Notes: a model not told the origin generated them from the letters alone. A stretch of 64,000 nucleotides of DNA from Convolutriloba macropyga (GCF_964194025.1 NC_134481.1:23994001-24058000), one strand, 5' to 3'. Shown: positions 1-61,068, counted from the stretch's first letter. Numbers and translations are program-made.

Positions 1-79
1 TCAATTGCTCTAAAAGCAAGATTCAGAAACCTATGTTCCTCCTCGTATCTAATGTCAACAAACTCAAATATAAACTTAG

Positions 80-850
80 AGCTTCTGTAAGTCTAGACTG
101 GATGAGATGATCAAACACATTTTGAATTTTCGTTTCATGGAGTATCAATTTTGTTCGTTAGAGTAACATTTTTTTTCTGCACCAACAATGTTTTGAAAGA
201 TAAAAAAGAAACAATGCAAACAAAACAAATAAAATAGCATAAGTCGACCTCGCGTCTAAGTTCTGTCTCTTTTAAGAACCATGTTTGTAAAGATCCAGTT
301 TGTCAGTTTTTTCTCATATCAAAATATTTTTCTTTCGATTTTCGAATTGTTTTTCAGATTTGTACACCCCAATTACTCCTGTTTCTATCAATTTAAATAG
401 TGTCTAACACTTGTTAACGAGCCATTGAAACTCTCTGCAAAAAGTTCTATTTGCACAAAGATAAATGTCTATACGAAATTCCCGAAATTGTATAAGAAAT
501 TTGTTTAAGGACAGTCAAAATGTCCTTAGACCAAATTTTTCACAAAAGTAAACAAAAAGCGTTTTCCCCGGGAGCTGCAAAAATTCAGTAGCAGTTGCTA
601 TCGCAAATAAATTGTGAAACCAATGCAAAGAGTAATTGGCGAATTTCGTCACTGACAATTGCATCTAAAATGCATGACTGTTCTTTTAATATTTTTTTCC
701 GTCACCTTGAACTAACATTCATAAAGCCTATTTCGATTTTTAAAGACATCGCTCTCGCTTCGTTCTATTCTTGGTTTATCTGGAGCCTATCTAAAAATCA
801 ATCGATTCAAGAGACTTTTTTGACATAATTTATACCGATTACAAGAAAAA
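80..850. repeat. Degenerate local duplication (partner about 2709-3480)
   Basis: gcttctgtaagtctagactggatgagatgatca (80) matches gcttcggtaagtctagattggatgagatgatca (2709). Colinear similarity continues, e.g. ttttccccggga/ttttcccaggga and ctgacaattgcatctaaaa/ctgacaatttcatctaaaa. Confidence 0.7.
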
Positions 851-889
851 AAAAATATTTTGACCGCGCTCGTCAACAGTCGATTAAAC

Positions 890-1420
890 TACAAACTTCA
901 TAGAATGTGACAAATCTGGCTGTTAGATACATACCACACAGGCACAAGGATTCCAACTGAGGCATGGACAAACAAGTCAACCGGAGACGTATTTTGGGTC
1001 TTCAAAAATTGCACTAAATACGAGAAGAAGCTTGTGAGAATGACGAAAATAAAAAAAAGACATAAACAGGAGGCCGCAGGAAAACAAATTGACAGTGTCA
1101 GACATGAGAACTAAGTAAACTTATTCTAAAGTTCATTCGCACCAAAAGCTGCTTAATTTCAACATTAAAAATTTCCCAAAGATAAGAACAAGATAAGAAC
1201 CAACTAGGATGTTCAGGTACACCACAAGCTCTCGCAACCAATTTAAAACATTTAAATTTTATGCAGCATAAATTTTAATTCCACAAAACAAAGATTTACT
1301 GGGAGAAAATTCAAAGTTTCGAATATCAGACGATTTTGGGCCAATTTGACAATTCGTTTTCCAACAACAATTCCTGGACGGTACAAAAAATGTTCGCGAG
1401 CGCTCACGAAATCAAAAAAA
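890..1420. repeat. Degenerate local duplication (partner about 1750-2340)
   Basis: Shared colinear blocks gcacaa.gattccaactga, ttgcactaaa, tttcccaaaga, tcaaagtttcgaatat and caacaattcctggacggtacaaa occur in both regions. Confidence 0.7.
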
Positions 1421-3584
1421 AATAATCAACAAAATGAGAAGAAGATATTTGTCGGCGAATACCAGGGGGATGTATTGGAAAAGATCCCATGAATCTAGTT
1501 GTGCTAGCGACGCCAATTAAGCACACCAGATTTTCATTCTTTGCTTTTTTCCATCAAAACATTTGAAACAATTATTTTGTTTTGGTGTTTTACAGCAACG
1601 GTAGGTGGTGCGGATGGGAGCAGTATCTCATTAGTAGCATTTTGTGAAATGGTATGCGAAATATGACAAGGACAAGCAGTCAATCAGTAGTGGATCCGAC
1701 TGAACAAGTTCATATTGCTCGTGAACAGCTGATGAAACTACAAATTTTAATAGTTGTGACAAATATGAGTTCTGCGTACATATCACATATGCACAAAGAT
1801 TCCAACTGAAACGTAGGCATACATGTTGACTGAGGGCGTCTTCTGGTTCTGCAAGGATTGCACTAAAGCCTCGAAGAAGGTTGTGAGACTATATGCAACC
1901 ACAGAATAAACCAACAGAAATCTGTAGGGAATGAAATCAACACTCTCAAACCTCAAATCTAAGTCAAATCAATCTAAATAAACACCGCCACTAAAACTGC
2001 ATATTGTCGACAATGAGAGTTTCCCAAAGACAAACACAAGTTCTGAAGTTAAAAAATCAACTAAACCAAAAAATCTGGCAACCAAACGAAATTGTTTGAT
2101 TTTTTTTGCAGCATGAAATTAAATTCATTGATTCATAGGTTTTCTAGGAGAAAAAGTAATCAAAGTTTCGAATATAAAACGATATAGAGTAAAATCGACA
2201 AATGTTTTTCCAAGCGACTGTCGCGGTTGGCATCTTGACATTCAACAATTCCTGGACGGTACAAATTTGTCTGCAATTGCTCAAAAAATCAATTTGAAAT
2301 AAATTTTAACCAAGTTAAGGAGACAAAGATCTTTTTCAGCTAATCTGTGAAAATGGAAGAAAAAAATCAAAGAAAAGGAATACCTGCTCAAAAGATATAA
2401 ACTGGAGGGATAACCGCGCAAAATTTGAATCTTCATCCAGAAATTTTTCTATGATTGGACTGAAATTGATGCATCCCAGTTTTGAATAAGTGAGAAAAAG
2501 GAGTCCAAGGAATGTCTTGAGTCGTTTGTTTTTAACACACGCCATATTATTAATCAATAAAAACACCTGCAAACTATGTAATATCAACAGCTGCGGAACT
2601 CTTGCCTTTAGAGACGTGGCTTCATTGTTTTTTAATTGATAACGAGCTCTTTCTTCACAATAACACAGATTTTTTATCAGAAAGCAGTGATCAGAAATAA
2701 TGTTTACAGCTTCGGTAAGTCTAGATTGGATGAGATGATCAGGCAGATATTTGAATTATCTTTTAATGGAGTAACATTATCATTTGTTGGAGAAACATAA
2801 ACATAATTATTCTGCTTCAACAATAGTTTTGAAACACAAAAAAGAAAAACCAAACAATTTAAATAAATAAGTAGAGCTGGAGTGCATTGCTGAAACATTG
2901 ACTGAAGAAGATAAAACAGAATGTGACTCAAATTAGCACTGTCTTGATCTACTGAGAAAAAGTTCAAATGCTGCGGAAATTTTGCCTCGTCTGCAATTCC
3001 AGTTCTGTTAATTTAAAAAACAAGTCCCAATTTTTTTAAAATGATTAGAAACCTGAAACATTTTGCTAATCACAAAACAAAAGGTCCAAAAGAATTTCCA
3101 AAAATTGTACAGAAAAAATAATCATGGACAGTAAGTGAATCCATAAACAAAATATTCAACAAAATTAAACAGAAAGTTGTTTTCCCAGGGACCTGAAACT
3201 ATTCATTTGAATTTCCTACCTACAAAATGATTTTAGGTCCGATGTTAAGGATTATATACAACCTGCTCTTCTGACAATTTCATCTAAAAGTTTAGAACGT
3301 TGTTTAATTATATGGTTTACTTTCATCTTGAACGTATTTTCCATGGAACCCAATATGCTTTTGCAAAACGATGCTCTTGCGTTGTTCTGTTCTTTTTTTG
3401 CCTCGAATCTATCTATAAATGTTTTGGTCCAAAAAGATTATAAAAATACTTATTCAAATTTTGAGAAACCACTCCTTAATGTTGACCATACTATTTTTTA
3501 AACAAAAATTTTCAACCTTTTTGTTCACAGGAAAAATATTAAACTTTCGCAATCCTTAACGTTAATGTTTATCCGTTAACGTGA

Positions 3585-3950
3585 AAAATGGAGTTCCGTA
3601 GGGTTCTCTTCTGGCATCTCTCTTCTTTGTAATTTACGTCAACGATTCGCCATAAACTTGAAGATGTTGTTCTTCCCTTCAATTCATTCTAGTTAATTAG
3701 TTTAGATTGATTTGGCGATTGGATCTTAATCGGGTGATTAAATGGAGTGAAAAACACAAAATTCCTTTAAACATTGGAAACTGCACGCATATCTCAATGT
3801 CTAATTTCATTCATCACTTCTCTTCTACTGGAGCATTGATCAAAAAATTACACATACAGAAGCATTTAACGATTTATGGAACAAGTAGTCTTAAGCGGAA
3901 ATCCCACTTAATGATTTTTTTCCTCCCTGTGAACACGGAGTTTTTCTTTT
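3585..3950 (+). pseudogene. Degenerate CR1/L2-group LINE reverse transcriptase fragment
   Basis: Translates as KNGVP*GSLLASLFFVIYVND (cf. GVPQGSVLGPLLF.IYIND) and DLNRVIKWSEKHKIPLNIGNC (cf. DL..L..W......N..KC). Confidence 0.7.
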
Positions 3951-4193
3951 TCTGAAAGAGTTCCCATTGTGTCAGTTTAATTACAATTGTATAAATCCAA
4001 TGTTCTGCCGGTTTAGTTATATGGGCCAATTTTTTGTTTGTTTGATGACTGGGATAACCCGAACTGAAACTTGACTGTTCAAATCCACGGCCTGCAATTT
4101 GGCAGCAAACTGCCTTCATTAGAAGTTGTTGTGCTCTTGTAAATGTGCTTCCCCAGACTGTACATTGTAGAGGAGGATTGGGTTTGAAATGTC

Positions 4194-4243
4194 CACTACT
4201 TAATCCTATTGCTACTATATCTACGGCTAGTACTAGTACTGGT
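4194..4243 (+). repeat. Degenerate TAC/TAG-rich microsatellite running into the first N gap
   Basis: actacttaatcctattgctactatatctacggctagtactagtactggt lies immediately before the Ns. Confidence 0.55.
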
Positions 4244-4631
4244 NNNNNNNNNNNNNNNNNNNNNNNNNNNNNNNNNNNNNNNNNNNNNNNNNNNNNNNNN
4301 NNNNNNNNNNNNNNNNNNNNNNNNNNNNNNNNNNNNNNNNNNNNNNNNNNNNNNNNNNNNNNNNNNNNNNNNNNNNNNNNNNNNNNNNNNNNNNNNNNNN
4401 NNNNNNNNNNNNNNNNNNNNNNNNNNNNNNNNNNNNNNNNNNNNNNNNNNNNNNNNNNNNNNNNNNNNNNNNNNNNNNNNNNNNNNNNNNNNNNNNNNNN
4501 NNNNNNNNNNNNNNNNNNNNNNNNNNNNNNNNNNNNNNNNNNNNNNNNNNNNNNNNNNNNNNNNNNNNNNNNNNNNNNNNNNNNNNNNNNNNNNNNNNNN
4601 NNNNNNNNNNNNNNNNNNNNNNNNNNNNNNN

Positions 4632-5100
4632 NTCTTTCGAAATTAATGGAGAGAAAACTTGAGAGTTTCCACTGTGGTTGTCTTCGGAGAATTCTACGTG
4701 TGTCATATCTGGAGAAAGCAACGAACGAAGAAATTATGTCAAGATCACGAATGCCCCAACTATCCACGATGATCATGCTCAAACGGATAAAATGGTACGG
4801 ACACATCCAGAGAATGGAACCAGGAAGATTAGCCCGCAGTGCCTTCGATTGGGACCCGCCCGATCAATACGTCCATGCTAGACGCGCTCCTGGGGGGCAA
4901 CGGAAAACGTGGATGAGTCAAATCGAAGGAGACTGTGTACGAAACAAAGTATCGTTCACCAGATTGCAGGAGAAAGCAGCAACCGGGTCAAAGAATGCCT
5001 TCAACAATTTCGTCGTACAGCACTTCACAGAATAACCAAACAAAAAACTCTTCTTGTTTTGTTTGTATTTGTTGCCAACCGTGCCTTTATTTCATATTTG
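4632..5100 (+). mobile_element. RTE-clade LINE 3' fragment (subfamily A), near-identical to 8461-8929
   Basis: Encodes KLMERKLESFHCGCLRRIL...KWYGHIQRM...PGGQRKTW, with only a few substitutions versus the neighbouring long copy, including the 3' UTR. Confidence 0.95.
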
Positions 5101-5233
5101 NNNNNNNNNNNNNNNNNNNNNNNNNNNNNNNNNNNNNNNNNNNNNNNNNNNNNNNNNNNNNNNNNNNNNNNNNNNNNNNNNNNNNNNNNNNNNNNNNNNN
5201 NNNNNNNNNNNNNNNNNNNNNNNNNNNNNNCAA

Positions 5234-5309
5234 CCTCACCTCCACGTGGTGTCCCATGGGGGTAGGTCATGTGCTGCGGCTCTCCGCTCACATGGTCGAG
5301 CTAACGAGG
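5234..5309 (+). ncRNA. HDV-like self-cleaving ribozyme core, copy A (5' P1 strand not visible, presumably in the N gap)
   Basis: P2 CCTC/GAGG; P3 ACC/GGT with L3 TCCACGT; P1 3' strand GTCCCAT; GG for P1.1; P4 GGTCATGTG/CACATGGTC plus GCGG/CCGC; J4/2 GCTAA with putative catalytic C5301. Confidence 0.85.
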
Positions 5310-5368
5310 CACTGGTCTTCTAGTTTGTGGCGCAATTAGTCGTATCTCAGCCTTCAAACACCAAAGCA

Positions 5369-8300
5369 ATGAGTACATTCAACCATGGCCCCGAGTCCCG
5401 TGTAAGGGGTGCTAAGAATCTCCCGAGGAACCAACTCAGAATTGCAACTTTAAACGTCAGAACACTGACCCAAGCCGGATCTTTAGAGGCTTTGAAAATG
5501 GATCTGGCGCAATACAAGTTGGATATTCTGGGAGTGCAGGAGACGAGATTGCAGGAGCAAGAAATTGATCTCGGAGACCACAAGCTCTACCTGTCTGACT
5601 CGTGGTTGTCTGGTGTAAAGTCGAGACAAGGAGGAGTGGGCGTTGCTGTAAAGAAGTCATTGATAAACAGCATCGTAGAACAAGTGGCTCTAAGTGAACG
5701 TATTTGCTACGTCAAGTTCGCGGCTCGGAGGAGAGCCAATCTAGCTGTTGTTGTCTGCTACGCACCTACGAATGAAGCTAGTCTCCAAGAGAAGGATTTG
5801 TTTTGGAGTCAACTTTCAGACCTAGTTTCCAGCTTCAAACATAGGGAGCGTATTTGTGTCATCGGTGACCTCAATGCAGAGCCTGGACACCAGTTGAATG
5901 ACACCATGAGCTGCAGAGGCCCGTTTGGAATGGGTGAAGAAAATGAAAACTCGGAAAAGTTGTTATCATTTTGCACTTCACACAAATTGCTCTTAGGTGG
6001 TACATGGTTCCAGCATCGACAAGTGCATCGGTACACCTACAACCCTCCCGATCCGAGTTGTCGAAAAAAGATGCTGGATCACATTCTGTTTGCAGAGAGA
6101 TACAGAGGATGTCTGACGAAAGTGAGGACCAGAAGAGGGAAAACCACAATTACCGATCATGAATTGGTCATTGCGGAAGTATCTATGAAACTTTTGTCTA
6201 AAAAGCCATGTTTCACGCCCAGAATCAGTTCTGCAAAGCTGCAAGATGAAACAACGCGTGACTTATTCACGCAGGAGGTCAAGTTACATCTTGATAAGAG
6301 CGGCGATTTCGAGAATACAGAGCAGTCTTGGGACAATTTTCGAAAAGCCCTGAACCAAGCAGCAGTGAAATGCCTCCTTCCGGACAAGCGAGTGAACAAA
6401 CCTTGGATTTCTCCAGATTCTCTGGAACTTATCCGGAAACGAGCTGATCTACAGTTGAAGAAACACAGCAGCGCGGTGGCGTTGTTAGAGTTCACAAACT
6501 GCTGTAAGGAAGTCAGAAAAGCTCTACGTGCAGACAAACGGGCATGGCTTGACCGCAAAGGCCAAGAAGTGCAGAGCTTTGCGGACAGAGGCAACTTGAA
6601 GGAGGTTTTTGGGGCATCACAGCAGATTTGCCGCAACTGGAGTCCCCAGTTGACCAAATTAGTTTCAAGCACTGGCGTCAACTTACGGACGAAAGAGGAA
6701 CGACTTGAACGCTGGACGGAACATTTTAGTCAACTCCTGAATCCCTCAACATCCAGTTGCAGTACGAGATTGGATCCCGAAGAAGCAGCTGAAAGCTTGT
6801 CGATTGACCCCAATTCGATTTGAAGAAGTGCTTGAAGCTGTCCGCAGGTTGAAGAATGGCAAGGCAAGTGGACCCGATAACATTTCCTGTGAGATGTTGA
6901 AAGCACGCAAGGGTATTGTCGAGTGGCTCTGGGACATCATAGATAAGTGTTGGTCGACGGAAGTTCTGCCCGATGACTGAAAGGTAGCAGAAATTGTCCC
7001 ATTATACAAGAGTAAAGGAAAGAGGTCAGAGTGTTCGAACCACCGAGGGATCTCTCTATTGTCAGTACCAGGCAAAGTGTTCGCTTCCGTTATTCTCAAT
7101 CGATGCAAAGATTCAGTGGATCGCGTCTTAAGGGAAGAGCAGCGCGGCTTCAGAAAAAGCAGAGGATGAGCCGATCAACTCTTTGCCCTGCGTCAAATAA
7201 TAGAGAAATCTATGGCGTTTCAATTGGATATTAGCTTTTGTTTCATAGACTTTCGAGCGGCATTCGATTCTGTCGATCGTGAGCAGATGTACCAGATAAT
7301 GAAACACTATGGTCTTCCGCAAAAAGTGATAAACATCATAAGAAACAGCTATGATGGATTCAAATGTCGAGTCAAAGCCGAAGGTGAGAAAGGACGCTTA
7401 TTTGATGTCAGAACGGGCGTTAGGCAGGGTGATGTGTGGTCCCCAATCCTATTCGGCCTTGTCATCAACTACATTTTGGCTAACTCGGTGCATGGAGGAT
7501 TAGACATTGGGAGATTGGTGGCTGACTTAGATTTTGCTGATGATGTTGCTCTCGTGGGGGTCTCAGACAGTGAGGTGCAAGAAAACCTACATCGAATCGA
7601 GGCCCTTGCGGAAGCCGCTGGTCTGAAGATTAATGTGGCCAAAACAAAGAATTTGGGCGTAAAATGCGACAGCTCAAATATTGTTGCAGTGCCTAGTATC
7701 CAACAGAACGTGGAGATACTCACTGGAACACATAAAGGCAAACTAGGACTCCTGGCAGAGACATCTAGCCAGTCACGACTAACCATCAGCACGGAGGTGC
7801 TGCTGGGAACGAAAAAGAAAGCGTGCTGGTTCGAAACACAAGATGGCCGGAAGCTAAGATTGAAAAGCTTAGCGGTGGCTAAGCCAGCGTTGGTAGCTTC
7901 ACAACAACAATCTGCAGTAGCAGATTCAGAGTCGCTAGAAAATGAGAGTCGGTCAGTGGTGGCTGACCAAGAGTCTTTAAGATGTCAGAATTGTCAGCGG
8001 CAATTCAGTACAGTTACCGGACGCAAAGTGCACCAAACAAGATTCTGCAAAGCCGGTTTGTCAAAGAATGTCGTCGACAAGTCAAAGTTCGAGCAACTAG
8101 AGGCGAGTCTTACCTGTGACAAGTGTGAAAGAAAGTTCAAAACAGTCAATGGCCGAAAAGTTCACCAATCGAGATACTGTGGCAAACCTAAAGCAGTTGC
8201 CACACGCGTGTTTTCCTGCAAAGTACAAGATGTTCTCGGAAACGAGTTTGAAAACATAGAAGCGTTCAAGTATCTCGGATCATATGTCAGCCTCAAGCAT

Positions 8301-8864
8301 GGAGACCTGCAGGAAGTCAATTGCAAACTTGCAGAAGGTAGACAACGGTTTGCTAACTTCCAAAATCTCTGGAAGGGCAAGCAGCTCAGCGTGCACCTCA
8401 AGTGCAATTTGTACAAAGCACTCGTTTTATCAGCCGTGCTGTACAGCTCAGAGACTTGGACTCTTTTGAAATTAATGGAGAGAAAACTTGAGAGTTTCCA
8501 CTGTGGTTGTCTTCGGAGAATTCTACGTGTGTCATATCTGGAGAAAGCAACGAACGAAGAAATTATGTCAAGATCACGAATGCCCCAACTATCCACGATG
8601 ATCATGCTCAAACGGATAAAATGGTACGGACACATCCAGAGAATGGAACCAGGAAGATTAGCCCGCAGTGCCTTCGATTGGGACCCGCCCGATCAATACG
8701 TCCATGCTAGACGCGCTCCTGGGGGGCAACGGAAAACGTGGATGAGTCAAATCGAAGGAGACTGTGTACGAAACAAAGTATCGTTCACCAGATTGCAGGA
8801 GAAAGCAGCAACCGAGTCAAAGAATGCCTTCAACAATTTCGTCGTACAGCACTTCACAGAATAA
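5369..8864 (+). pseudogene. RTE APE-endonuclease/RT ORF with a frameshift near 6808 and in-frame TGA codons at 6978 and 7167
   Basis: ORFs 5327-6823 and 7212-8864 are bridged by an alternative frame reading PIRFEEVLEAVRRLKNGKASGPDNI...PDD*KVAEIVPLYK...NHRGISLLS...EEQRGFRKSRG*ADQ. Confidence 0.92.
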
Positions 8865-9266
8865 CCAAACAAATAACTCTTCTTGTTTTGTTTGTATTTG
8901 TTGCCAACCGTGCCTTTATTTCATATTTGGAATTAAAGTGTNNNNNNNNNNNNNNNNNNNNNNNNNNNNNNNNNNNNNNNNNNNNNNNNNNNNNNNNNNN
9001 NNNNNNNNNNNNNNNNNNNNNNNNNNNNNNNNNNNNNNNNNNNNNNNNNNNNNNNNNNNNNNNNNNNNNNNNNNNNNNNNNNNNNNNNNNNNNNNNNNNN
9101 NNNNNNNNNNNNNNNNNNNNNNNNNNNNNNNNNNNNNNNNNNNNNNNNNNNNNNNNNNNNNNNNNNNNNNNNNNNNNNNNNNNNNNNNNNNNNNNNNNNN
9201 NNNNNNNNNNNNNNNNNNNNNNNNNNNNNNNNNNNNNNNNNNNNNNNNNNNNNNNNNNNNNNNNNN

Positions 9267-10198
9267 CAACCTCTCCTCCCCGTGGTGTCCCCTGGGGTAA
9301 GTGATGCAGCAGCTGCCCGTAGGACAGATGCATAGTACAACCGAGCTAACGAGGCAAGGATCCTCTAGTTGGTGGCGCGACTAGTTGTATATAAGCCTTA
9401 AAACCCAATGCAATGACTTCAATACTGCGGAAGAGAAAATGCTGGAAGGTCTCGCATTTTCTCCTGCAATTTCCACGATCGAGATGGAGTGGAGTTCGAA
9501 AATGTAGAAGCTTTCAAGTACCTGGGTTCTTTCGTGAGCTTGCAACATGGTGATCTAAAGGAAATCCGTGTCAAGCTGGCGGAAGGGAGACATTGATTTG
9601 CGAGCTTTCAGAAGCTTTGGAAAAGCAAACAACTTAGTATTCCCCTCAAATTCAAGTTATACAGAGCTCTTGTGTTATCAGTGGTCTTTTGTAGCTCTTA
9701 AACGTGGACCATGAATAAATCAACGCAACGGAAACTTGAGAGCTTTCACACCAGTTGTCTGCGAAGGATACTATGTTTATCATATATGGAGAGGGTGACA
9801 AATGAAGAAGTACTGGCTAGATCATGTATGTCGACACTTTCTGCAATGATCATGATTAAATGGTTGAAATGGTTTGGCCATGTCCTGAGGATGAATGACG
9901 ATCGTCTAGCGCTTCGAGCCTTCACCTGGGAGCCGACAGAAAAATATTGTTATGCTAAACGAGCTTCAGGGGGTCAACGCAAGACGTGGCTGGACCAACT
10001 TGAAGAACATTGCTCAAGGAACAACATGAGCTACATCACCTTACGACAGAAAGCGAAAAAAGAGTCTAAATCCCGCTTGAACAGTTTTGTCGAACAGCAT
10101 TTCCTGGATTAAATAAACGCAAATAAGCTCAACTTATATACATTTAATTAACTTGTTTGTACTTATTTTCATTGTACCTTTATTTCTTTATGGAATTT
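9267..10198 (+). mobile_element. Internally deleted non-autonomous RTE copy (subfamily B)
   Basis: Ribozyme, 5' UTR and ATGACTTCAA are fused at about 9422 to YCG...FENVEAFKYLGS and the C-terminus. About 2.8 kb is missing relative to copy A. Confidence 0.88.
9270..9354 (+). ncRNA. HDV-like ribozyme core, copy B
   Basis: CCTC-TCC-TCCCCGT-GGT-GTCCCCT-GG, a different P4 (GGT/ACC, ATGCA/TGCAT, CTG/CAG), then GCTAAC-GAGG. One P3 mismatch. Confidence 0.8.
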
Positions 10199-10453
10199 NN
10201 NNNNNNNNNNNNNNNNNNNNNNNNNNNNNNNNNNNNNNNNNNNNNNNNNNNNNNNNNNNNNNNNNNNNNNNNNNNNNNNNNNNNNNNNNNNNNNNNNNNN
10301 NNNNNNNNNNNNNNNNNNNNNNNNNNNNNNNNNNNNNNNNNNNNNNNNNNNNNNNNNNNNNNNNNNNNNNNNNNNNNNNNNNNNNNNNNNNNNNNNNNNN
10401 NNNNNNNNNNNNNNNNNNNNNNNNNNNNNNNNNNNNNNNNNNNNNNNNNNNNN

Positions 10454-13400
10454 AATCCATCCTCACCTCCCAGTGGTGTCCTCTGGGGTAAGCGTTGCGG
10501 GGCTCTGTCGCGCAAGCTGAGCTAACGAGGCAATGGTCCTCTAGTAGGTGGCGCGACTAGTTGTATTATAGCCAACAACCCTATAATAAGACTTCAACTA
10601 ATGAGAAAAGCCACGAGTCCCGAGTAAGGATTGCTAAGAATCTCACGTGGACAAAAATGAAGATTGGATTCCTAAATTTCAAGACGTTTGCTCATGCTGG
10701 TTGTTAGCAGACGCCTAAAATGGACTTAGCAAAGTACGAATTAGACATTTTAGGAATTCAAAAAACCATATTTGACGAACAGGCGATGGACCTTGGAACG
10801 CACAAACTCTTGTTTACCAACTCATTGCGTTGCTTCAATTGTTCAAAAAAAAGCAGTTGTGGACATTTTGGTTAAGAAGACACTGCTTGGCTGCATAATC
10901 GAAAACGTGACTGTGAATGAACGCTTGTGCTATATCAAATTTTCTGTGCAGTAAAAAACAAATTTCATCGTCATTGTATGTTATGCGCCGGCAAATGAAG
11001 CGGATATTTAAAATAAAGGAAGGGTTTTAAGGATTTTTGAACACTCTAACAAGTTTGACAAAATGTTTCAGAGAAAGGGAGCGCAAAAGTCTTATCGGAG
11101 ACTTCAATGCAGTGCCGAGAAGTAATAAACAGATTAAACATCTATGCATTGGCTCTTTTGGTTTTGGCGATGAGAACGATAACACAGAAAATTTATGAGT
11201 CTCTGTGATGCAAACAAACTAATGATTGGAGGAATATGGTTTCGCCGCCGTTTTGTGCATAGGTACACTTTCAACCCACAGCATAAAAAATGTAGGAAGA
11301 AACTGTTGGATCGTGTATTGCTCACAAGTCGTTAAGGCAGCTGTTTACAAGATGTCAGAACCAAAAAAGGAAATTCTACTTTGACTGATCATGAATTATT
11401 GAGAGCACTTTTAGATATTAAACTGCAGAACTCTAAACTTCGTATAACTGCAAAAATTAAACTGACAAAATTGCATGACGAAGTGGTTCAAACCGAGTTC
11501 AACAAATTAGTGAAAATAAAATTGCATGAGAATGAGGATGTTGACGACGTTGAACAATCGTGGCTCATTTTTCGCAGTGCTCTTAACGAAGCTGCCTCAA
11601 ATGTAATTGTGCAGGATATAAAAATCACAAGCCATAGATATCTAAAGAGACAATCGATCTCATTATAAAGAGAGGCGAGATGCAGTTAAAGAAAAACTCA
11701 AGCAAAGCGGAGGCTTTGTTTTAGACCAATTTGAATAGATAAACGAACTCAAGTGAAGCAGAGGCTTTGGTTGAGTAAACTGACACTAAACCTAACAAAC
11801 CGGAGACTTTGATAGAATTTGAAGACTGCTACAAACTTGTGCAAAATACTGTGCGGGCTGATAAAAGAAAATGGCTCACTGAAAAAGGTACTCTGATTCA
11901 AGAACTTGCTGATAAAGATAGCATCAAAAAACAAAACTTTTTGTTTTTTGATGCTCTTGATCACTACTTCGTACAAGGGCAACATCATCAGCAAAGTCAA
12001 GGTCCGCAACAATTTGGCCAATGTCTGTTCCACCACGCACGACTTCGAACAGGAAAAGAGACCATACATCACCTTGACGAACTCCAGCTCTAACCTCAAA
12101 TGTATCCCCTACCTCTCCTTCAGATTTGACTCGACATTTGAAGCCGTCATAGCTATTCCTGATAATGTTCACAATTTTTACAAGTAGTCCATATTGTTTC
12201 AGTATTTCGTACATGCTGTCTCTCACAATTGAATCAAAAGCCAATCTAAAGTCAATAAGGCAGAGACTAAGATCACTTGGTTCCACAACGCTTTTTCAAT
12301 AATCTATCTTAGCGCAAAAAGCTGGTCGGTACAACCTCTGCTCTTCTTGAATCCACACTGCTCTTCCCTCAATACCTTATCTAGATTTTCCTTGCATCTG
12401 TTTAGAGATACTGCGGCAAACACTTTCCCGGCACTGACAGTAGAGAGATGCCACAATAATTGCTACAGTCTGTTCGTTTTCCATTCTTCTTGTACATAGG
12501 ATTGAAGAAACTGCGCAGAAGGTTGGTTTCCTGAATAACTTTAGCATGACCAAGAACATGGGTGTATCGCTTCAACACACAATGGCCTTAACATCAGCAC
12601 AGCAAAATCAAGTCGAGATTATAAAAGGACGTTACAAAGGACAATCTGGATTCCTCGGGAAGATAGACAAAACCTTGAGTTTATCCATTGGCACGGAGGT
12701 GCTCGAGGGAACGAAGAAAAAAATTAGGCTGGTTTGAAACCTTGAAAGGAGACAAATTCTGACATGCAAGACTGGTCACAATGGACCACCGGAACTTACA
12801 AACGAATCAAACAATGCTCGAAGTGTAAGCGTTGTTTTGATACTGCGGTTGGACGAAAAGTACCCGAGTCAAGATATGGCAAGAAAGCTGATGAAAACAC
12901 AATGCCTCAGTTAGTGAAGCCCATTGGTGCGAAGTTCGAAAACCTTGAAAAGAACTTTAGATGAAATAGATGCCAACAAAAATTCAAGTCTGTAACGGTC
13001 GGTCGAAAAATACAAGAAGCGAGATATTGCGGTAAACTGAAAGCCAGAGTTCATAGATGTCTTTCTAGCAGTGTAAAGGACGCTTCGGGTACCGAAATTG
13101 AGAGCGTTCGTGGTTTAAATTGTCTAAGATCTTACGTCAGTTTACAGGACGGTGATGCAGAAGAAAATATCTGTAAATTGGCTGAAGGTAGACAACGCTT
13201 CAGTGATTTTTCGAACATATGGAAAAACAAACAATTAGCGACAACATTGAAGTGCAAGCTTTACAGAGCGTTCATCTTGTCAGCGGTGTTGTGCAGCTCG
13301 GAGACATGGACGATAAACCAAGCGTTAGTGAAAAAACTCGATAGCTTACATCTCAACTGCCTACGTTGTATACTTTGTTTGTCTCACATGCCAAAATAAC

Positions 13401-13827
13401 TAACCAGTCTGTGCTTAACAAAACACTGATGCCAACCATATCAAAAATTGTCTTAATCAGACGCTTTAAATGGTTTGGACACATCCAAAGAATAGAGAGC
13501 AACAGACTGCTAAGGAAAACTCTTGAAAGGCACCCCACTGAGCACTATCCAAATGCCGTGAAATCTGTTGGAGGACAGCGAAAGACATTGCTAGATCAAC
13601 TGCAAAACGACTGCAACAGAAACAAGATAGATTTTTCAGTGGTTCAAGTAAGAGCTATTAGCAATTCGAGATCAGTCTTCAACAAATTCGTCAACGAAAA
13701 ACTTCTCGTTTAATTGATAACTTGATTTCGATTTAATTTAATGATTACTACGTTTATATTCTTGCCTGAAATCCATGCTTGATTGTCTTGTGATAGTGCT
13801 TCTATTTCTTAATGGAATTCAAGTGTT
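10454..13827 (+). mobile_element. Old degraded RTE copy (subfamily C) with an internal deletion and an inverted RT block (about 11936-12493)
   Basis: Fragmented APE motifs on +; IDFRLAFDSI/GVRQGD/DFADD on the minus strand (ORF 11924-12286); + strand resumes with HRIEE...TKNMGV, the KOW/ZnF insert and the C-terminus. Confidence 0.9.
10461..10530 (+). ncRNA. HDV-like ribozyme core, copy C
   Basis: CCTC-ACC-TCCCAGT-GGT-GTCCTCT-GG, P4 AGC.TTGCG/CGCAA-GCT, then GCTAAC-GAGG. Confidence 0.83.
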
Positions 13828-13858
13828 GTATCAGTAGTAGTATTAGTAGTAGTATTAC
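13828..13858 (+). repeat. (TAG)n-like tail at the 3' end of RTE copy C
   Basis: gtatcagtagtagtattagtagtagtattac directly follows the conserved 3' end ggaattcaagtgtt. Confidence 0.8.
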
Positions 13859-13859
13859 T

Positions 13860-14398
13860 TGTATTATTTGTCAATGGTCTTTTTTAGCTCTGAAACGTGG
13901 ACCATGAACAAACAAACGCAGCGAGTAAATGAAAGTTTTCACTGCAGTTGTCTGCAAAGGATCCTATGTATATCAAACCTGGAGAGGATGACAAATGAAG
14001 GAGTACTAGCTAGATCACTTATGTCGACTTTTTCTGCAATGATCATAATGAAACGGTTTAAATGGTTTGGCCTTGTCTTGAGGATGAATTACAATCGTTT
14101 AGAGCTCCGAGTCTTCACCTGGGAGCCGACAGAAAAATACAGTTAAGAAAACGAACTCCAAGGGGTCAACGCAAGACATGGCTGGATCAACTTGAGGAGG
14201 GCTGCTCAAGACACGACATGAGCTACATCGCCTTACGACAGAAAGCCAAAAAAGAGACTAAATCCCGGTTCAACAGTTTTGTCGAAGAGCATTTCTTGGA
14301 TTAAAAAGCTCGAAAAAACTCAAACTTATATGCATTTTATTACCTTGTTTGTACTTATTATCGTTGTTCCTTTATTTCTTTATGGAATTTAAGTGTTT
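13860..14398 (+). mobile_element. 5'-truncated RTE 3' fragment (subfamily B)
   Basis: SSETWTMNKQTQR...PRGQRKTWLDQLEE...EHFLD is highly similar to 9670-10198, including the 3' UTR. Confidence 0.9.
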
Positions 14399-14404
14399 AA
14401 AAAA

Positions 14405-15230
14405 CGTGTGTTCCCCAAGGATAGGTTCTAGGTCCCGTTCGTTTTTCATGCTACCTTGTTCCTCTTGAATTTCTGTTTGAACGTATTGATGTCAATTAGC
14501 ATTTTTATCTCAATGACACTGTTATCTATTTTGTTAACCACGCTTCGATAAATCAGGGGGCTTTTGGTTTGATGCTCTGCAAAATTTTTAGGGGCGCTAG
14601 GCACCGAGTAGACTAATCAAATTGAGTATTAGTAGAAAGAAATGTTTTAGTTGCGATTTTGAACTTCCAGCTGACTCAAACTTTTCGAAGAATGTTACTT
14701 TGCTGGGCTTCAACTAGGTTGCAGACTTTGCTAGTTATATGTGTCGTAGGTGTTTTTATTCCCTGCGAAGAATTTACTCCATCATAGATACAGTCGACAG
14801 AAAGTTGTTGATCAAGTTAGTTCCGGTAATGATTCTTTTGCGACTAAATTAATGCCAATCGCTGTACTTTGGACTACCTGGATAATATACAGAAATTACA
14901 GCGCATATTGAAATCAAAATGTCTCATTTTTAGAGTATCCCCTGGTTCACCAACAGCGAATTATATCAAAAAGTTCATTGGCTACACATGAAACAACGTG
15001 TCTTTTACGAAGATTTACTGTTTTGGTTCACCATCCCTGGAGGGTTCGCGTGTATCTTGGCGCATTAGATTTCCGAAATGATAAGGTGACTAGATGCCAA
15101 TATGCATGCAATTTAAAGGTTCCTAACGTCAGAACTGCTATCGGGCGATGATCATTCAGTTTTGCTGTTCCTTAAGAATGGAATTTGTCGCCTTTTAAAA
15201 CTAAATTTATACCTTATGAGTTTGATAATC
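14405..15230 (+). pseudogene. Highly degenerate L2/CR1-group LINE remnant
   Basis: VPQG*VLGP motif at about 14410 and the L2-like C-terminal PNVRTAIGR*SFSFAVP*EWN at about 15122-15185. Confidence 0.6.
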
Positions 15231-15291
15231 AAAAGGTTTATGTCCAATGAGCGGGAGAGGGGTGCATAAATTATCAGTTTTATGGTTTCTC

Positions 15292-17484
15292 TGTTGGTCT
15301 CAAGTTGATATGAAGTCCTAGTCTCCTAATACTCGAAAACGACTCAAAGGAGTTGCTAAAAATTTTTATTTTTTGAAAAGAAGCATACCGTTATAAGTTT
15401 CTAGTCTCCGCAAGAAAATGTTGCACCAAACGATGATTTTATCTGTCTTACTTTACTGCTCCCAAGCTTAGTGTGTTACAACTGGTATTTTGAAAGTGTT
15501 AGAAAAGTTTCAGCGCAAAGTGTTGCGCTGGGTTATTAGGTCTGAGGATTACAACGAGACACCTTCAAAACTAAATTTGTATCAATTTTGCGAGCTGACC
15601 TTATTCTACTGTGGAAAACTTGGCATGGAACAATGGAGAGTGACATCAAGCTACATGTCAATAGAACAACACTCAGTTCCCGAGGATCGGTCAAAACATT
15701 TTTGAACAACCGTTGATCAAAGAGGTCAAAGCTGACAACTGTTTTGTTAGTCGAACTACCCACGCCGCCAATTACTTAATTTCTATCAACGTCATTGACT
15801 TTAGATCATCTTTTAAAAATTTTTGTAAGAATTTAGATAATTTTCTTATAGCCAAAACACTTTCTTTTAACTACTATCGGCCATATACATATTTTCTTAA
15901 ATGTCGCTGTGTGGCCATGTACATATTTTCTTAAATGTCGCAGATCTCAATTTGCTAATTTGCTTTGTTAATTTGTACTGTCATGTCTTTCTTTTACTAT
16001 GTAGTTTTCCTCTTATTGGAATTTAAGTCTTTTACTACTGGTACTACTACTACTAAAAAGCGCTAAAAAAGGCGCTAAAAAGTGCGCTACAAAAAGTTTT
16101 TCTAACTCTACAATGCGTAAATAATTGAAAACCCCTATTAAAATTTGGGTACTCTTATATAGCACTTTGCAATGTGCGACTTGGGGCGTCAGACTTTTAC
16201 GCCCATGATGAGTAATGTATAAAAGTAAACATGTGAGTAATATATATCATACGGAAAAAGAGAATTCTCTAAACTTTGTGGAAATATGTTAACAAGTTTT
16301 TTTAACCCTCACATCTGCACATGGCGCGTTTGTTGCGACTACCAGAGGTGCAGAAATGTGTGGACATTTTAAACAGACCCGAGGGAGCTTGTTGGTCTCA
16401 AGTTGATATGAAGTCCTTGTTTCCTAATACACAGAAACGACTCAAAAAGAGTTGCTAAAAATTTTCATTTTTTGAAAAGAAGCATACCGTTATAAGTTTC
16501 TAGTCTCCGCGAGAAAATGTTGTACCAAACGGTGATTTTATCTGTCTTACTTTACTGCTCCCAAGCATAGTGTGTTACAACTGGTATTTTGAAAGTGTTA
16601 GAAAAGTTTCAGCGCAAAGTGTTGCGCTGGGTTATTAGGTCTGAGGATTACAACGAGACACTTTCAAAACTAAATTTGTATCAATTTTGCGAGCTGACCT
16701 TATTCTACTATGGAAAACTTGGCATGGAACAATGGAGAGTGACATCAAGCTACATGTCAATAGAACAACACTCAGTTCCCGAGGACCGGTCAAAACATTT
16801 TTGAACAACCGTTGAACAAAAAGGTCAAAGCTGACAACTGTTTTAGTCGAACTACCCACGCAGCCAATTAACTAATTTCTATCAACGTCATTGACTTTAG
16901 GTCATCTTTTAATAATTTTTGTAAGAATTTAGATAATTTTCTGATAGCCAAAACACTTTCTTTTAACTACTATCGGCCATGTACATATTTTCTTAAATGT
17001 GGCTGTGTGGCCATGTACATATTTTCTTAAATGTCGCAGATCTTAATTTGCTACTTTGCTTTGTGAATTTGTACTGTCATGTCTTTCTTTTACTATGTAG
17101 TAATCCTCTTATTGGAATTTAAGTCTTTTACTCTTGGTACTACTACTACTAAAAAGCGCTAAAAAATAGTCGCTATAAAGTGGGCTACAAAAAGTTTTTC
17201 TTACTCTACAATGCTTAAAAAATTGAAAACCCCTATTAAATTTTGCGTCTATTATATAGCACTTTGCAAGTGCGACTTGGGGCGTCAGACTTTTACGCCC
17301 ATGATGAGTATTGTATATAAGTAAACATGTGAGTAATGTATATCAGTACGGAAAAAGAGAATTCTCTAAACTTTGTGGAAATATGTTAACAAAAATTTTT
17401 TAACCGTAACATCTGCACATGGCGAGTTTGCTGCGACTGCCAGAGGTGCAGAAATGTGTGGACATTTTAAGCAGACCCGAGGGA
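15292..17484 (+). repeat. About 1.1-kb tandem duplication (15292-16386 / 16390-17484). Each unit is a CR1-group LINE 3' fragment with a (TAC)n tail plus about 330 bp of RPS17-upstream DNA
   Basis: Units align nearly base for base. Each encodes LLYCSQA*...LEKFQRKVLRWV and ends ggaatttaagtcttttact...tactactact. Confidence 0.92.
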
Positions 17485-17595
17485 ACTAGTCCCCTCAACA
17501 TTCAGCTGAAAATTTAATACAACAACAATAAGTGGTTTATTGGCAATTCTAAAAAAAGCTTTTCAGATTTGATCGTTGTCTAAGGATCTGCAGAC

Positions 17596-17750
17596 ATGGG
17601 ACACGTGCGAACTAAAACAGTGAAGAGGGCAGCCAGAGTTCTCATCAACAAATATTACAGCAAACTTTCGGCTGATTTCCACTACAACAAGATGGTCTGC
17701 GGAACTGTTGCCGTCATCCCGAGTAAAAAACTGCGTAACCAAATTGCAGG
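17596..17750 (+). CDS. RPS17: 40S ribosomal protein S17 (eS17), coding exon 1
   Basis: [52 protein letters not shown], followed by a GTGAGT donor (phase 2). Confidence 0.96.
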
Positions 17751-18639
17751 GTGAGTTTTATTACGAGTAATTAAAGTAATGTTTTATAAGCTTAAGAAAT
17801 CTACTACTACTATCATATTTGAGAGTTATGAAGTGAAAATTTTGCCCCTCTTTATTGCCCTTATATGAGAGCGAAAGCCCTGAATGTGAGAGCGGAGGGG
17901 AAAATACTTTTCAAAAGAACTTGAAGAGTCTTTGCAATGTTAGCATAAAAATATCCCAATAGACAGAAAATTAGGATCATTGGGTTATTTTTAGGAACGA
18001 ACAGCTCAATGGGCAACATCAATCAATAACCAGAAGATCATTAATAGAACAATGTATTAATTAATGTAATTTTAACAATGTAGTTTTTATTTCAATAAAT
18101 AATTATAATTATTCCGGCGCCATGCAAACTTTGACCTCTCGATTAAATCATTAATTTACATGTTTGGAAAAATGTTGTTGATTTGTTTGTTTCTCTTGTG
18201 GGTCATTATTGCGTCATCTTCTATTTAATTATTTTTCATATTTGTCTGCTTTAAGCGTTTTGATCAGCGTTGACGTTAATCGTTGACAGTTTACAAACAA
18301 TAGGAGCTATTTAATTTGAATCATTAAGACGTTATTTTCGAGGTTAAAATTGTCCATTTGTGAGATTTGAAACAAACAGAAATTGTTGGAGGTTTTTTTA
18401 CTTCTAGTAGTAAACTGCCGCCTAATTATTTGCATAAATTTGTGAAACATAACTGGCTAACTTCGGGCCAGTTGCTCTCAAACGACCTACGAAGGGCTGT
18501 CTTTAGTAGCAGCTAGCTTAAGCTTAAGAAATCTAGCCTCATTTTGACGGTGCGTGTGGCATCAAAAGTCAATTGCTTTTTTGTTTGTCTTTTATATCCT
18601 CATGAACATTTTAAACGATGTCTTTGGAAGCCAATTGTC

Positions 18640-29768: not shown

Positions 29769-30425
29769 ATGTCTTTGATTATTGGCTATTGGCCAATCCG
29801 TGGCCTTGCTGAGTCCATTTATTTGACATTGGAGTACTTGGAGATACCCTACGAGAAGAAAGCTTACACACGGGAAAATTACCTAGAGTGGTTTGAAAAT
29901 GATAAACTAAACCTTGGAATTGACTTCCCAAATCTACCCTATTTAATCGATGGAGACTTCAAAACTTCCCAGTCTCTGGCCATTTTGAAGTATATTGGAC
30001 GCAAGCATGGTTTGTTTGGCGGAGAGTCAAACGAGGAGATTACAAAACAAGAGGCACTTCTTGACAGTATCTATGATTTGAGAATGCGGTTTGCTCGCTT
30101 GTGCTACAGTGACGACTTCGAAAATAAGAAAAAAGAATATTTGGACAATTTGGCTAAAAATCTCAAATTTTATGACGATTGGTTAGCTAAGCGTAAATAT
30201 ATGAATGGTGACAAATTATTTGTCGGAGATTTCTTTCTCTGGTCAGTACTGGACATAAATGACTTGATGTCGCCAGGCATAATGGAACCCTTCCCCAATG
30301 TTGCGCGGTTCAAAAATGAGATCGCCTCCCTACCAGCTATTGAGAAATATTTGAAGAGTGAACGATTTAAAAAGTTCCCGGTAAATGGATTCACTGCTAA
30401 GTGGGGCGGGAAAGAGGAAGCGTAA
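29769..30425 (+). CDS. Mu-like glutathione S-transferase 1, intronless CDS, 218 aa
   Basis: IGYWPIRGLAE, LGIDFPNLPYLIDGD, SQSLAILKYIGRKH, GDFFLW. Catalytic Tyr present; no vertebrate mu-loop (Sj26-like). Confidence 0.96.
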   Translation: MSLIIGYWPIRGLAESIYLTLEYLEIPYEKKAYTRENYLEWFENDKLNLGIDFPNLPYLIDGDFKTSQSLAILKYIGRKHGLFGGESNEEITKQEALLDSIYDLRMRFARLCYSDDFENKKKEYLDNLAKNLKFYDDWLAKRKYMNGDKLFVGDFFLWSVLDINDLMSPGIMEPFPNVARFKNEIASLPAIEKYLKSERFKKFPVNGFTAKWGGKEEA

Positions 30426-42787: not shown

Positions 42788-44135
42788 ATGGCTCCGCTAG
42801 TTGGCTATTGGAATATACGTGGGATTGCCGAGCCAATTTATCTAATCATGGAGTACTTAAAAGTACCATACGAAAAGAAAATTTATGATGTCGAAACATT
42901 CAACGAATGGACAGAACTTGACAAAGATTGTCTAGGGTTAGATTTTCCCAACCTTCCCTATCTTATCGACGGGAACTTGAAGCTAACCCAAACTTTGCCG
43001 ATTATGAAATATATTGGACGGAAATATAAATTATTTGGACGTGGTTCTAACGAAGAGATGGCGAAAGAGGAAGAAATTGTGGAAAATATACGAGATATCC
43101 GAATGAAGTTTGCGTCGCTTTGTTATCGTGATGGGTTCGAAGCGAACAAGGTAGGAACAGTAATCCTGTATGCTGTATTATAAATAAGACAGTATTGCTG
43201 AAAAATGAGTGAGTCTGTCAAACAGATTTTGGCCGATTTCTGCCAAAAAAACCCTTTATCCTATAGGGGTTCAATTCCCAGCCTGGAAAAACGTTTTGGC
43301 ACAATTGTTAAAATGCAAGCGAAAGACCTTCATATTTAAGATGCACACAGTACTGGGGGGGGGGGGGGGGGGGGGGGTCAGTTCATTTAAATTGGCAAAT
43401 CTTCAGGGATACTGGAATTTATACCGTTTATTATCTTATAAGATGCTCAATGAAAAGGTTTTTTAAAATTTAAATGAATATTTATCATTTAGATTCAGCA
43501 AATTTGTTTTCAAATTTGAAAAGATGAAATAAACGCTTTCATCAAAAATGTCATTAAGAAATGGATTGGGGGATTGATGCACAAGGATGCACTGAGATTT
43601 GAACGACTGAATTTCTTCCATTTAAGGCCCCTGTCTAATTTACTAAACAGCATTTGCTACCTGGATATGTTCCTTTTCCCTCAACAATAACTTTGTTTTT
43701 GCAAGCTTTAAAAGACACGTTAATTAGTTTTTTTTAATTGATTATAGTCTTGAAAAGACTGATGTTTTTGGTCGGTTAGAAATTTACAAAAACGCAATGA
43801 ATCAAAAATTTCAAATAAGGAAAAGGAAACATTACTGCAAGGCGAAATATTTTACTGATGTGAACAAAATTTTACCCCACTTCGAGCTGAAACTAGCCAA
43901 TCACAAATGGTTAACTGGAGATAATATATTTATCGGCGACTTCTACTTGTGGTCAGTTCTAGACATGAACGAATGTCTTGAGGAAGGTTTTTTGTCTGGG
44001 TTTCCTAACTTGAAGTTGTTCAAAGAAAACGTGGAGAAGTTGCCCGCAATTGGCGCTTACTTGGAGAGTGAAAAGTTTCAGTGGTTTCCAATTAACGGGC
44101 CTACAGCCAAGTGGGGCTCGAAGGAGAATCAATGA
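42788..44135 (+). CDS. Mu-like GST 3, exons 42788-43150 and 43842-44135
   Basis: VGYWNIRGIAE...FEANK|gtagga...caag|AKYFTDVNK gives a gap-free alignment with GST1. The acceptor is atypical. Confidence 0.88.
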
Positions 44136-58393: not shown

Positions 58394-59074
58394 ATGGTTT
58401 TAACAGTTGGATATTGGAATATCAGAGGCTTAGGAGAACCCGTCCACTTAGTTCTAGAGTATCTCCAACTACCCTATGATCGCAAAACGTATTATATAGA
58501 GAATTATCTGGAATGGTTCGCAAAAGATAAGGTCGAGTTGGGAATGGACTTTCCCAACCTTCCTTACGTCATCGATGGAGAGTTCAAGGTTGCACAGACG
58601 TTGACGGTTCTGAAGTACATCGGACGGAAGAATGGCCTCTTCGGATCCGACGATGTGCAGGAACTTGCAAAGCAGGAAGAAATCCTGGATAACATCCACG
58701 ATTTCCGCATACGATTTGCCAGATTGTGCTATGGAGAGAAATTCGATTCTGATAGAGTCAGCTATTTTGCACCACTGCCAAATGAACATCTGAACAACGT
58801 GTTCAGACTTTTGGCCAACTATGAATCACTTCTATCCAAAAAGAAATACTTGACCGGCGATAACCCTTTCGTAGGAGACTTCTTTCTCTGGCATGTTTTG
58901 GATATTCATGAATGTTTGGAACCAAATATTTTGGAATCCCTGCCGAACTTAGCGAAGTTCAAAGCAGCGATTGCCAGCTTACCAGAGATTAATAACTATC
59001 TGAAGAGCGACAAATTTAAGAAGTTTCCAATAAATGCGCCTACGGCTAAATGGGGTGGTACTACTGAAGGCTAA
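58394..59074 (+). CDS. Mu-like GST 4, intronless CDS, 226 aa
   Basis: VGYWNIRGLGE, LGMDFPNLPYVIDG, GDFFLW, FPINAPTAKWG. AATAAA at about 59147. Confidence 0.96.
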   Translation: MVLTVGYWNIRGLGEPVHLVLEYLQLPYDRKTYYIENYLEWFAKDKVELGMDFPNLPYVIDGEFKVAQTLTVLKYIGRKNGLFGSDDVQELAKQEEILDNIHDFRIRFARLCYGEKFDSDRVSYFAPLPNEHLNNVFRLLANYESLLSKKKYLTGDNPFVGDFFLWHVLDIHECLEPNILESLPNLAKFKAAIASLPEINNYLKSDKFKKFPINAPTAKWGGTTEG

Positions 59075-60899: not shown

Positions 60900-61068
60900 G
60901 GTAGTAGTATAAGTAAATGACTAGTAGTAGTACTAGGGGGGGGGGGGGTCACGCACTGTAACAAAACGACCCCCTCTAAATCTTGCAAAAGGATTTTCGA
61001 CCCACCGGGATTCGAACCCGGATCTAGTGCATGGGAAGCGGATATCTTACCACTGGGCCAAAGGTGTA
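60900..61068 (-). mobile_element. tRNA(Gly-CCC-like)-derived SINE with a (TAC)n tail
   Basis: Minus strand: TGGCCCAGTGGTAAG (A box), TTCCCAT loop, perfect T arm CCGGG-TTCGAAT-CCCGG, non-pairing acceptor stem, then a short body, poly-C and tagtactactactag. Confidence 0.7.

Follow-up and report, generated by a model that had tools for sequence, protein, structure and literature searches.

The 64,000-nucleotide stretch of the acoel Convolutriloba macropyga genome analysed here (GCF_964194025.1 NC_134481.1:23994001-24058000, hereafter the window) contains, at 4633-14401, a head-to-tail array of a single lineage of retrotransposons that encode an apurinic/apyrimidinic endonuclease (APE) and a reverse transcriptase (RT). 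Its five copies lie on the + strand and belong to three subfamilies, A, B and C. We propose, with a probability of about 85%, that the array was built by repeated, orientation-specific insertion of this lineage into (TAG)n microsatellites. Since most junctions in the window are hidden by runs of N, the flanks were examined at ten paralogous loci, where 37 of the 38 visible 5' ends abut (TAG)n of at least three units and all 39 visible 3' ends run into it. This bears out the original prediction, made by a model from the sequence of the window, that the lineage inserts into the microsatellite it carries and that its arrays are self-seeding.

The copies of the window were mapped by blastn self-comparison and tblastn, and their coordinates are expressed in reference units A, B and C taken from the paralogous loci. 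The array and its gaps read as follows.

4244-4632: N run 1, between the upstream flank and copy 1, hiding the 5' boundary of copy 1
4633-5100, + strand: copy 1, a 3' fragment of subfamily A, reference A 3247-3730 (blastn and tblastn)
5101-5230: N run 2, the copy 1/copy 2 junction, where copy 1 lacks its last ~20 nt and copy 2 its first 13 nt
5231-8941, + strand: copy 2, a near-full unit of subfamily A, A 14-3742
8942-9266: N run 3, the copy 2/copy 3 junction
9267-10198, + strand: copy 3, subfamily B, internally deleted, with B 14-169 joined to B 2595-3369
10199-10453: N run 4, the copy 3/copy 4 junction
10454-13834, + strand: copy 4, an old unit of subfamily C with many stops and the C-type terminus GTGTTGTATCAG
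~11942-12500, - strand: inverted RT segment within copy 4 (tblastn minus strand, blastn), with a deletion of ~400 bp adjoining
13835-13857, + strand: degenerate (TAG)n of ~8 units, directly after the C-type terminus of copy 4
~13868-14401, + strand: copy 5, an old B-like 3' fragment, 85% identical to B

The number, common orientation, order and subfamilies of the copies had been given correctly in the original prediction, as blastn, tblastn and the reference map show, and so had the lack of any further copy: tblastn with the A protein finds none at E<1 in the window, the other 54 kb included. The inverted segment of copy 4 and the deletion beside it had not been mentioned. Copy 1 retains the last 133 codons and most of the 3' untranslated region (UTR). 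Copy 2 is 99.0% identical to an intact paralog and carries three inactivating lesions, namely a 5-bp deletion near 6809 and two nonsense mutations, at 6978 (TGG to TGA) and 7167 (TGC to TGA); it is a dead element, and one that died very recently. In copy 3, the join near 9422 fuses the 5' head to the last ~780 nt (the last ~230 amino acids and the 3' UTR). Copy 4 is 84-87% identical to a C paralog, and the start of copy 5 is blurred by its likeness to the repeat. An inverted RT segment beside direct sequence is also found in a B unit of another locus (L006 12525-12814); since the 5' direct part is present as well, these segments are not products of classic twin priming.

The four gaps lie at the ends of units. 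Their left edges start 8-20 nt short of a unit 3' end or, for run 1, after the upstream flank, and their right edges lie 8-13 nt inside the head of the next unit or, for run 1, inside copy 1; the gaps therefore correspond to junctions between units. No open reading frame (ORF) crosses any of them, so that the question of frame continuity does not arise. Of the four internal junctions, three are hidden in this way, and the only readable one is the degenerate tract at 13835-13857, rightly described before as (TAG)n-like. That the window array is a scaffolding artefact, with separate copies joined in the wrong order across N runs of estimated length, is very improbable: these three junctions are where such an error could have occurred, but every gap edge falls at a unit end, as expected for junctions that are hard to assemble, and the architecture recurs at ten other loci, in gap-free contigs and in a chromosome-scale record.

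Nine of these ten paralogous loci come from one set of long contigs and the tenth from the chromosome-scale C. macropyga record, whose A copies are 97-98% identical at the protein level to those of the window. Each was checked against the unique flanks of the window, and none is the window's own locus. Together they hold 40 copies, all co-oriented with the repeat, (TAG)n always being on the sense strand. The same target was thus found at both junctions, in one orientation, across ten loci. Immediately before the repeat, the 3' terminus reads GTGTT(G/C)AAACAG in A and B and GTGTTGTATCAG in C, and the tracts beside the copies measure 9-998 bp, with a median of ~210. At eight of the ten loci, between two and eight units lie next to each other, and A, B and C occur intermingled. 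The solitary copies (L001 and L005) have (TAG)n on both flanks, and their upstream tract is not preceded by an RTE terminus; one first copy (L008) has merely (TAG)3 upstream, and some of the host tracts are parts of other repeats. The occurrence of (TAG)n of other origin upstream of first and solitary copies indicates that the repeat itself is the target, and not just the element's own tail. The family is abundant, single clusters of proteins at 90% identity holding up to 331 members.

Alternatively, the arrays could have arisen mainly in the manner of a satellite, by unequal crossing-over or segmental duplication between (TAG)n tracts, which we consider improbable. Identical truncation points do recur, A 3258 twice at L002 and A 2621 twice at L007, and copy 1 of the window is 99.4% identical (blastn) to the matching stretch 8462-8929 of the adjacent copy 2, as against 96-98% between the A copies of the window and reference copy A. 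A head-only fragment lying between two tracts at L007 would also fit duplication. Some units therefore arose by duplication and not by insertion. Most array units, however, have truncation points of their own and the arrays mix subfamilies that are 35-50% apart at the protein level, which together argue for mostly separate insertions; moreover, the solitary copies too have (TAG)n on both sides.

Besides these recurring truncation points, several observations weigh against targeted insertion. The ten loci were reached via protein look-ups, and the sample is small and non-random; one paralogous copy (L002 1608), the leftmost of its array, has no (TAG)n upstream; and within the window just one inter-unit junction can be read, while copy 5, the rightmost, has no (TAG)n after it. 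Further points, which concern the assignment of the lineage and its 5' ribozyme, are given below with the evidence that they qualify.

A full unit of the lineage measures ~3.75 kb, 0.57 kb of which is an insert within the RT described below, and consists of a 5' fold resembling the hepatitis delta virus (HDV) ribozyme, one ORF of ~1165 codons, a 3' UTR of ~80 nt and (TAG)n. One paralogous locus holds intact ORFs of 1165 and 1153 codons, in which the Pfam matches above threshold are Exo_endo_phos (residues 26-243) and RVT_1 (from residue 553); there is nothing else, neither an RNase H domain nor a CCHC knuckle. The ORF starts ~150 nt from the 5' end of the unit and is the only one, there being no ORF1. 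In copy 2 of the window, these parts are placed as follows.

5231-5313, + strand: ribozyme-like core, from J1/2 to the 3' strand of P2
5369-6820, + strand: APE endonuclease domain and linker, with the start codon at 5369 (Pfam Exo_endo_phos, E 3e-12)
6804-8864, + strand: RT and C-terminal region, in another frame after the 5-bp deletion (Pfam RVT_1, E 1e-17)

The two in-frame TGA codons of copy 2 stand at conserved W and C positions of the RT, as they might under a variant genetic code. We give this explanation practically no credence and rejected it, because the corresponding codons of the intact paralog are TGG and TGC, within an uninterrupted 1165-codon ORF that follows the standard reading.

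RTE units measure about 3.2-3.5 kb and have neither an RNase H domain nor a C-terminal CCHC knuckle. In the present lineage, the single ORF with APE and RT, the size of the unit, the very short 3' UTR and the simple-repeat tail are all features of the RTE pattern (Tay et al. 2010, PMC2887409). Outside this genome, the closest relatives are proteins of ~1000 amino acids with APE and RT, carried on contigs of 3.1-3.9 kb, and the named homologues from which a clade label could have been taken are just 'hypothetical' or 'uncharacterized'. The lineage would therefore be of RTE type by its architecture and not by placement on a labelled RT tree, which is one of these reservations. AlphaFold models the RT well, the best structural matches being R2 and LINE-1 ORF2p.

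Full-length units are predicted to start with an HDV-like double pseudoknot, which is supported as a fold and which would be self-cleaving. Each of the three heads in the window begins at a gap, within which the missing 5' strand of its P1 would be located; the head of copy 2 has in addition a C-to-A change in the 3' strand of P1 compared with paralogs. Rfam at gathering thresholds has no match in the whole window, and on the window heads alone it gives just matches of E 3-6 that are cut off by the gaps. Among the paralogs, twelve copies have a 5' head from the first bases, eleven of which span the whole fold. These heads directly adjoin the repeat, their first bases (GGGGGAC or a close variant) pair with GUCCCCU 27 nt downstream, and the strands follow in the order P1, J1/2, P2, P3, L3, P3', P1', P1.1, P4, J4/2 and P2', which is the HDV-like order, with an invariant GCUAAC at the position expected for J4/2. 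Three HDV-family models of Rfam align from the same start G: drz-agam-1 with 26.9 bits (gathering score 37, E 0.001), HDV with 25.7 (gathering 50, E 0.049) and HDV-F-prausnitzii with 23.1 (gathering 44, E 0.017). In 13 distinct heads, 93.7% of the cells in P1, P1.1, P2 and P3 are paired, versus 41-55% when the partners are slid. A P4 hairpin, distinct in each subfamily, is found in all of them, and two C copies differ in it by an exchange of A-U for G-C. Furthermore, L011, the nearest relative outside this genome, shows its strands in an unchanged order, its P1 being formed by CCCCUUC/GAAGGGG, in which six of the seven pairs are changed on both sides with respect to the present lineage; its P2 is lengthened by a compensated pair and its P4 is long, with a fold z of -3.2.

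The other reservations apply to this fold. Every Rfam score of the heads is below the gathering score, and among the 13 distinct heads of this genome no pair is changed on both sides, because the ribozyme core is nearly invariant there; as to L011, Rfam finds no ribozyme in its head, and the fold given for it is a hand-made pairing table. The 5' ribozymes of the original prediction are thus retained as an HDV-like fold, on the strength of the complete paralogous heads, the sub-threshold Rfam scores and the changes in P1 of L011.

Several observations on the heads are recorded here for their own sake. Internal deletions that keep the first 157-209 nt, and with them the head, occur at 9422 of the window, L010 5783, L009 1683 and L006 9824, and join different downstream points (A 2145; B 1336, 826 and 2595); template jumping to the RNA 5' end or a splicing-like loss are possible causes. 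The head-only B fragment of L007 (15918-15986, 69 nt) lies between two (TAG)n tracts and breaks where the head holds GTAG, and an inverted head fragment is found at the contig start of L004 (1-73).

Within the RT, the lineage carries an insert of its own, located in copy 2 as follows.

7656-8231, + strand: lineage-specific insert of ~190 amino acids, between the KTK and F-x-YLGS motifs of the RT
7983-8048, + strand: zinc finger 1, C-x2-C-x12-H-x4-C
8115-8180, + strand: zinc finger 2, C-x2-C-x12-H-x4-C

It is composed of a beta-rich, weakly KOW-like module, a variable linker and the two C-x2-C-x12-H-x4-C motifs, both of which contain a conserved Phe. Relatives at 30-43% identity match the RT piece at residues 1-161 and 354-534 and skip the stretch between, and a search with the insert alone matches solely proteins of this genome's lineage. 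The zinc-finger insert postulated in the original prediction is therefore real and specific to the lineage, and it is conserved across A, B and C. The ligands of finger 1 are kept in A and B, while the third (His) is replaced in both decayed C copies seen; that of the window (copy 4) has also lost the last Cys of finger 1, and its finger 2 is decayed. The ligands and the Phe of finger 2 are kept in paralogous A, B and C (L009) copies. Matches of the fingers to known families are weak (Pfam zf-C2H2 types, E 0.01-0.5; Zif268 in the PDB, E 0.1), and the finger part has a predicted local distance difference test (pLDDT) score below 50 in two AlphaFold runs. The same holds for the family matches of the beta module (Pfam KOW, E 0.14, and KOW7_SPT5, E 0.19; ribosomal L24 in the PDB, E 0.77); the model gives it six strands at pLDDT 75-82, for which Foldseek ranks Spt5 KOW domains highest, all matches being non-significant at E of at least 0.07. 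'Zinc-finger RT' is thus right as a description of the sequence, and the fold class is tentative.

These features suggest how the arrays could have formed. Transcription would enter from upstream, often from a preceding unit, and the ribozyme would cut between the repeat and G1, yielding a unit-length RNA; within an array, this cut would at once provide the unit upstream with its (UAG)n 3' tail. The protein would bind its own 3' UTR and its APE would nick the (CTA)n strand, whose end would then pair with the (UAG)n tail and prime a reverse transcription that often stops early. Each insertion would split one (TAG)n tract in two and add repeat, so that the arrays would grow and seed themselves, and unequal exchange between tracts would reshape them further.

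The target could be read equally well by the APE, by tail pairing or by the finger module. Targeting may well be real and still owe nothing to the zinc-finger insert, if it suffices that the (UAG)n tail anneals to the nicked (CTA)n strand, whether or not the APE has a preference as well; the insert would then serve otherwise, for example in RNA binding or chaperoning. This is a serious possibility, to which we give somewhat less than even odds. Tail-to-target pairing has already been proposed for long interspersed nuclear elements (LINEs) with repeat tails (PMC13295347), and at L004 and L005 the tracts are shared, in opposite orientation, with an unrelated repeat that ends in the complementary repeat and of which one fragment, of 565 bp, is bounded by repeat on both sides. 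Bov-B copies, on the other hand, are rarely flanked by targets like their own 3' repeats (PMC13295347), which argues that a repeat tail alone is insufficient for such behaviour. Moreover, the insert and strict (TAG)n specificity co-occur in the one lineage seen, and the tails differ in two relatives that lack the insert, being (TGA)n in L011 and A-rich/AACTA in L012, of which L012 sits inside an unrelated non-TAG satellite. The bolder proposal is that the insert, a KOW-like barrel with two CCHC fingers, turned a dispersed RTE into an orientation-specific (TAG)n element in which one cut in the array would make both the 5' end of a unit and the tail of the preceding one. The RT of an APE-type LINE may then have acquired, in this insert, a targeting domain complete in itself. 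We regard this proposal as rather unlikely, if worth keeping in view.

The insert-less element of L012 (5600-9400) is a distant RTE relative from a different sample and lies within a satellite of ~190 bp; ATAGGCTGT occurs at both of its junctions and resembles a target-site duplication.

Much of the architecture is that of the RTE clade (RTE-1, Bov-B and lepidopteran RTEs), with which the lineage shares a single ORF of ~1000 codons outside the insert, an N-terminal APE followed by an RT, a very short 3' UTR, a simple-repeat end and frequent 5' truncation (PMC2887409). It differs in that nearly every copy lies in (TAG)n in one orientation and in the ~190-amino-acid RT insert that the relatives at 30-43% identity lack. 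Among APE-type clades, site-specific LINEs are reported to be confined to Tx1 and R1 (PMC13295347, PMC4640811). RTEs with HDV-like ribozymes have already been described (reviewed in PMC6765202). The HDV-ribozyme retrotransposons (R2, R4, Baggins and a mosquito RTE; drz-agam) likewise have a double pseudoknot at the exact 5' end, which would free the element RNA from a co-transcript, and drz-agam-1 is the best Rfam match here. The present heads, by contrast, have sub-gathering scores and a predicted cleavage site at the border of a microsatellite, and the cut in an array would also set the (UAG)n end of the upstream unit.

LINEs specific for microsatellites include Dong in the R4 clade, Waldo and Mino in R1, and Kibi and Koshi in Tx1. 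Others are Togen in NeSL and some HERO elements (PMC4640811). Insertion into a simple repeat in one orientation with no visible target-site duplication is common to these elements and ours, whereas the clade (by architecture) and the repeat, (TAG)n, are different, and the candidate DNA-binding module lies inside the RT and not at the N-terminus or between endonuclease and RT. The Penelope-like Naiad, Chlamys and Neptune elements show a microsatellite insertion bias and tandem arrangements, and a Zn-finger-like linker has been proposed as their repeat reader (PMC8557442); they differ from the present lineage by an unrelated RT class, a GIY-YIG endonuclease, hammerhead ribozymes or none, and (TA)n and (CA)n as repeats.

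The R2-like lifestyle on an APE/RTE chassis suggested in the original prediction can be kept as an analogy: the repeated, dispensable target, the 5' HDV-like ribozyme, the apparent reliance on co-transcription and the putative target-reading zinc fingers are all reminiscent of R2, and R2 proteins are among the best structural matches of the RT model. The endonuclease of R2 is absent. R2 has a C-terminal restriction-like endonuclease, N-terminal zinc-finger and Myb motifs and a target in 28S ribosomal DNA, whereas here the APE is N-terminal and the target is (TAG)n; the element is not a member of the R2 clade, and 'R2-like' applies to its lifestyle only. There are precedents for repeat tails of RTEs, for ribozyme-headed RTEs, for microsatellite-specific LINEs of other clades and for the microsatellite bias of Penelope-like elements; what looks new is a repeat-specific RTE whose RT contains a finger module. 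Our literature search found no description of acoel transposable elements, no (TAG)n-specific RTE and no RT-internal finger module, an absence that is no proof.

On its left, the array is preceded by a probable remnant of another element.

3600-4243, + strand: upstream flank, probably a decayed remnant of another LINE-like element that ends near 4193, with RT-like motifs in its translations

The original prediction had noted a TAC/TAG tract running into the first gap. The tract (4194-4243) is real, degenerate and mostly CTA/TAC, that is, the opposite strand of TAG, and it does run into N run 1. Together with the sequence before it, it aligns weakly with the 3' end and (TAC)n tail (16016-16056) of an element X described next; on this weak alignment, we rejected it as an RTE tail, and it is probably the tail of the LINE-like remnant upstream.

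Directly after the array, at 14399-17490, lies element X, a 5'-truncated and decayed LINE-like element that ends in TTGGAATTTAAGTCTTT followed by the (TAC)n at 16016-16056. A tandem duplication (15292-16392/16390-17490, 94% identical) comprises the last ~750 bp of X and ~350 bp of other sequence. The 3' termini of the RTE (GGAATTnAAGTGTT...) and of X (GGAATTTAAGTCTTT) both contain GGAATTnAAGT, seen at 8925-8941, 13815-13834 and 16016-16040 of the window and at L001 12645-12665, and the (TAG)n tail of the one is complementary to the (TAC)n tail of the other; the shared motif may be due to chance or to a common 3'-end recognition signal. A blastn comparison of element X with the paralogous loci gave no match. 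The unclassified repeat of L004 (from 8589) and L005 (9090-9654 and from 13356) abuts RTE-associated (TAG)n tail-to-tail, and it ends in a sequence that, when reverse-complemented, is an X-like terminus, yet the family is distinct from X. The 565-bp fragment at L005 9090-9654 is bounded by repeat on both sides, as if a second family exploited this microsatellite in the opposite orientation; Pfam finds no match in the ORFs of this repeat. Another repeat with internal (TAG)n hosts RTE arrays at L002 (12970-13270 and 20045-20215) and L003 (12565-12830 and 19800-20680). Its flanks are near-palindromic (...caagttggctgcag / ctgtagcctaacttg...), and one of its tracts, of 783 bp, is unoccupied.

Elsewhere in the window, translations read by eye point to the first exon of a ribosomal protein S17e-like gene at 17596-17754, followed by an intron with (CTA)4 at 17801-17812, and to three paralogous ORFs at 29769-30425, 42788-43183 and 58394-59074 that resemble mu-class glutathione S-transferases and form a small cluster, two being full length (218 and 226 amino acids) and one cut short. 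A short TAG-rich stretch at 60896-60960 includes (TAG)3 and is followed by 13 G, with no RTE sequence adjoining, and 62599-63387 is a satellite of 83-bp units in 9.6 copies with 93% matches.

For the evolution of target choice, the lineage would provide a fresh comparison, as an independent case, the third, now among compact elements of the RTE type with their single ORF, and its discrete protein insert and its repeat tail are two separable candidate causes of targeting. RTE-type proteins are in development as gene-insertion tools with random integration (PMC13708176), and a naturally targeted relative may therefore interest that field. The assembly and annotation of acoel genomes are affected as well, all four N runs of the window being at such junctions. 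More generally, our work suggests that a retrotransposon and a microsatellite can promote each other's amplification, giving arrays that extend over many kb.

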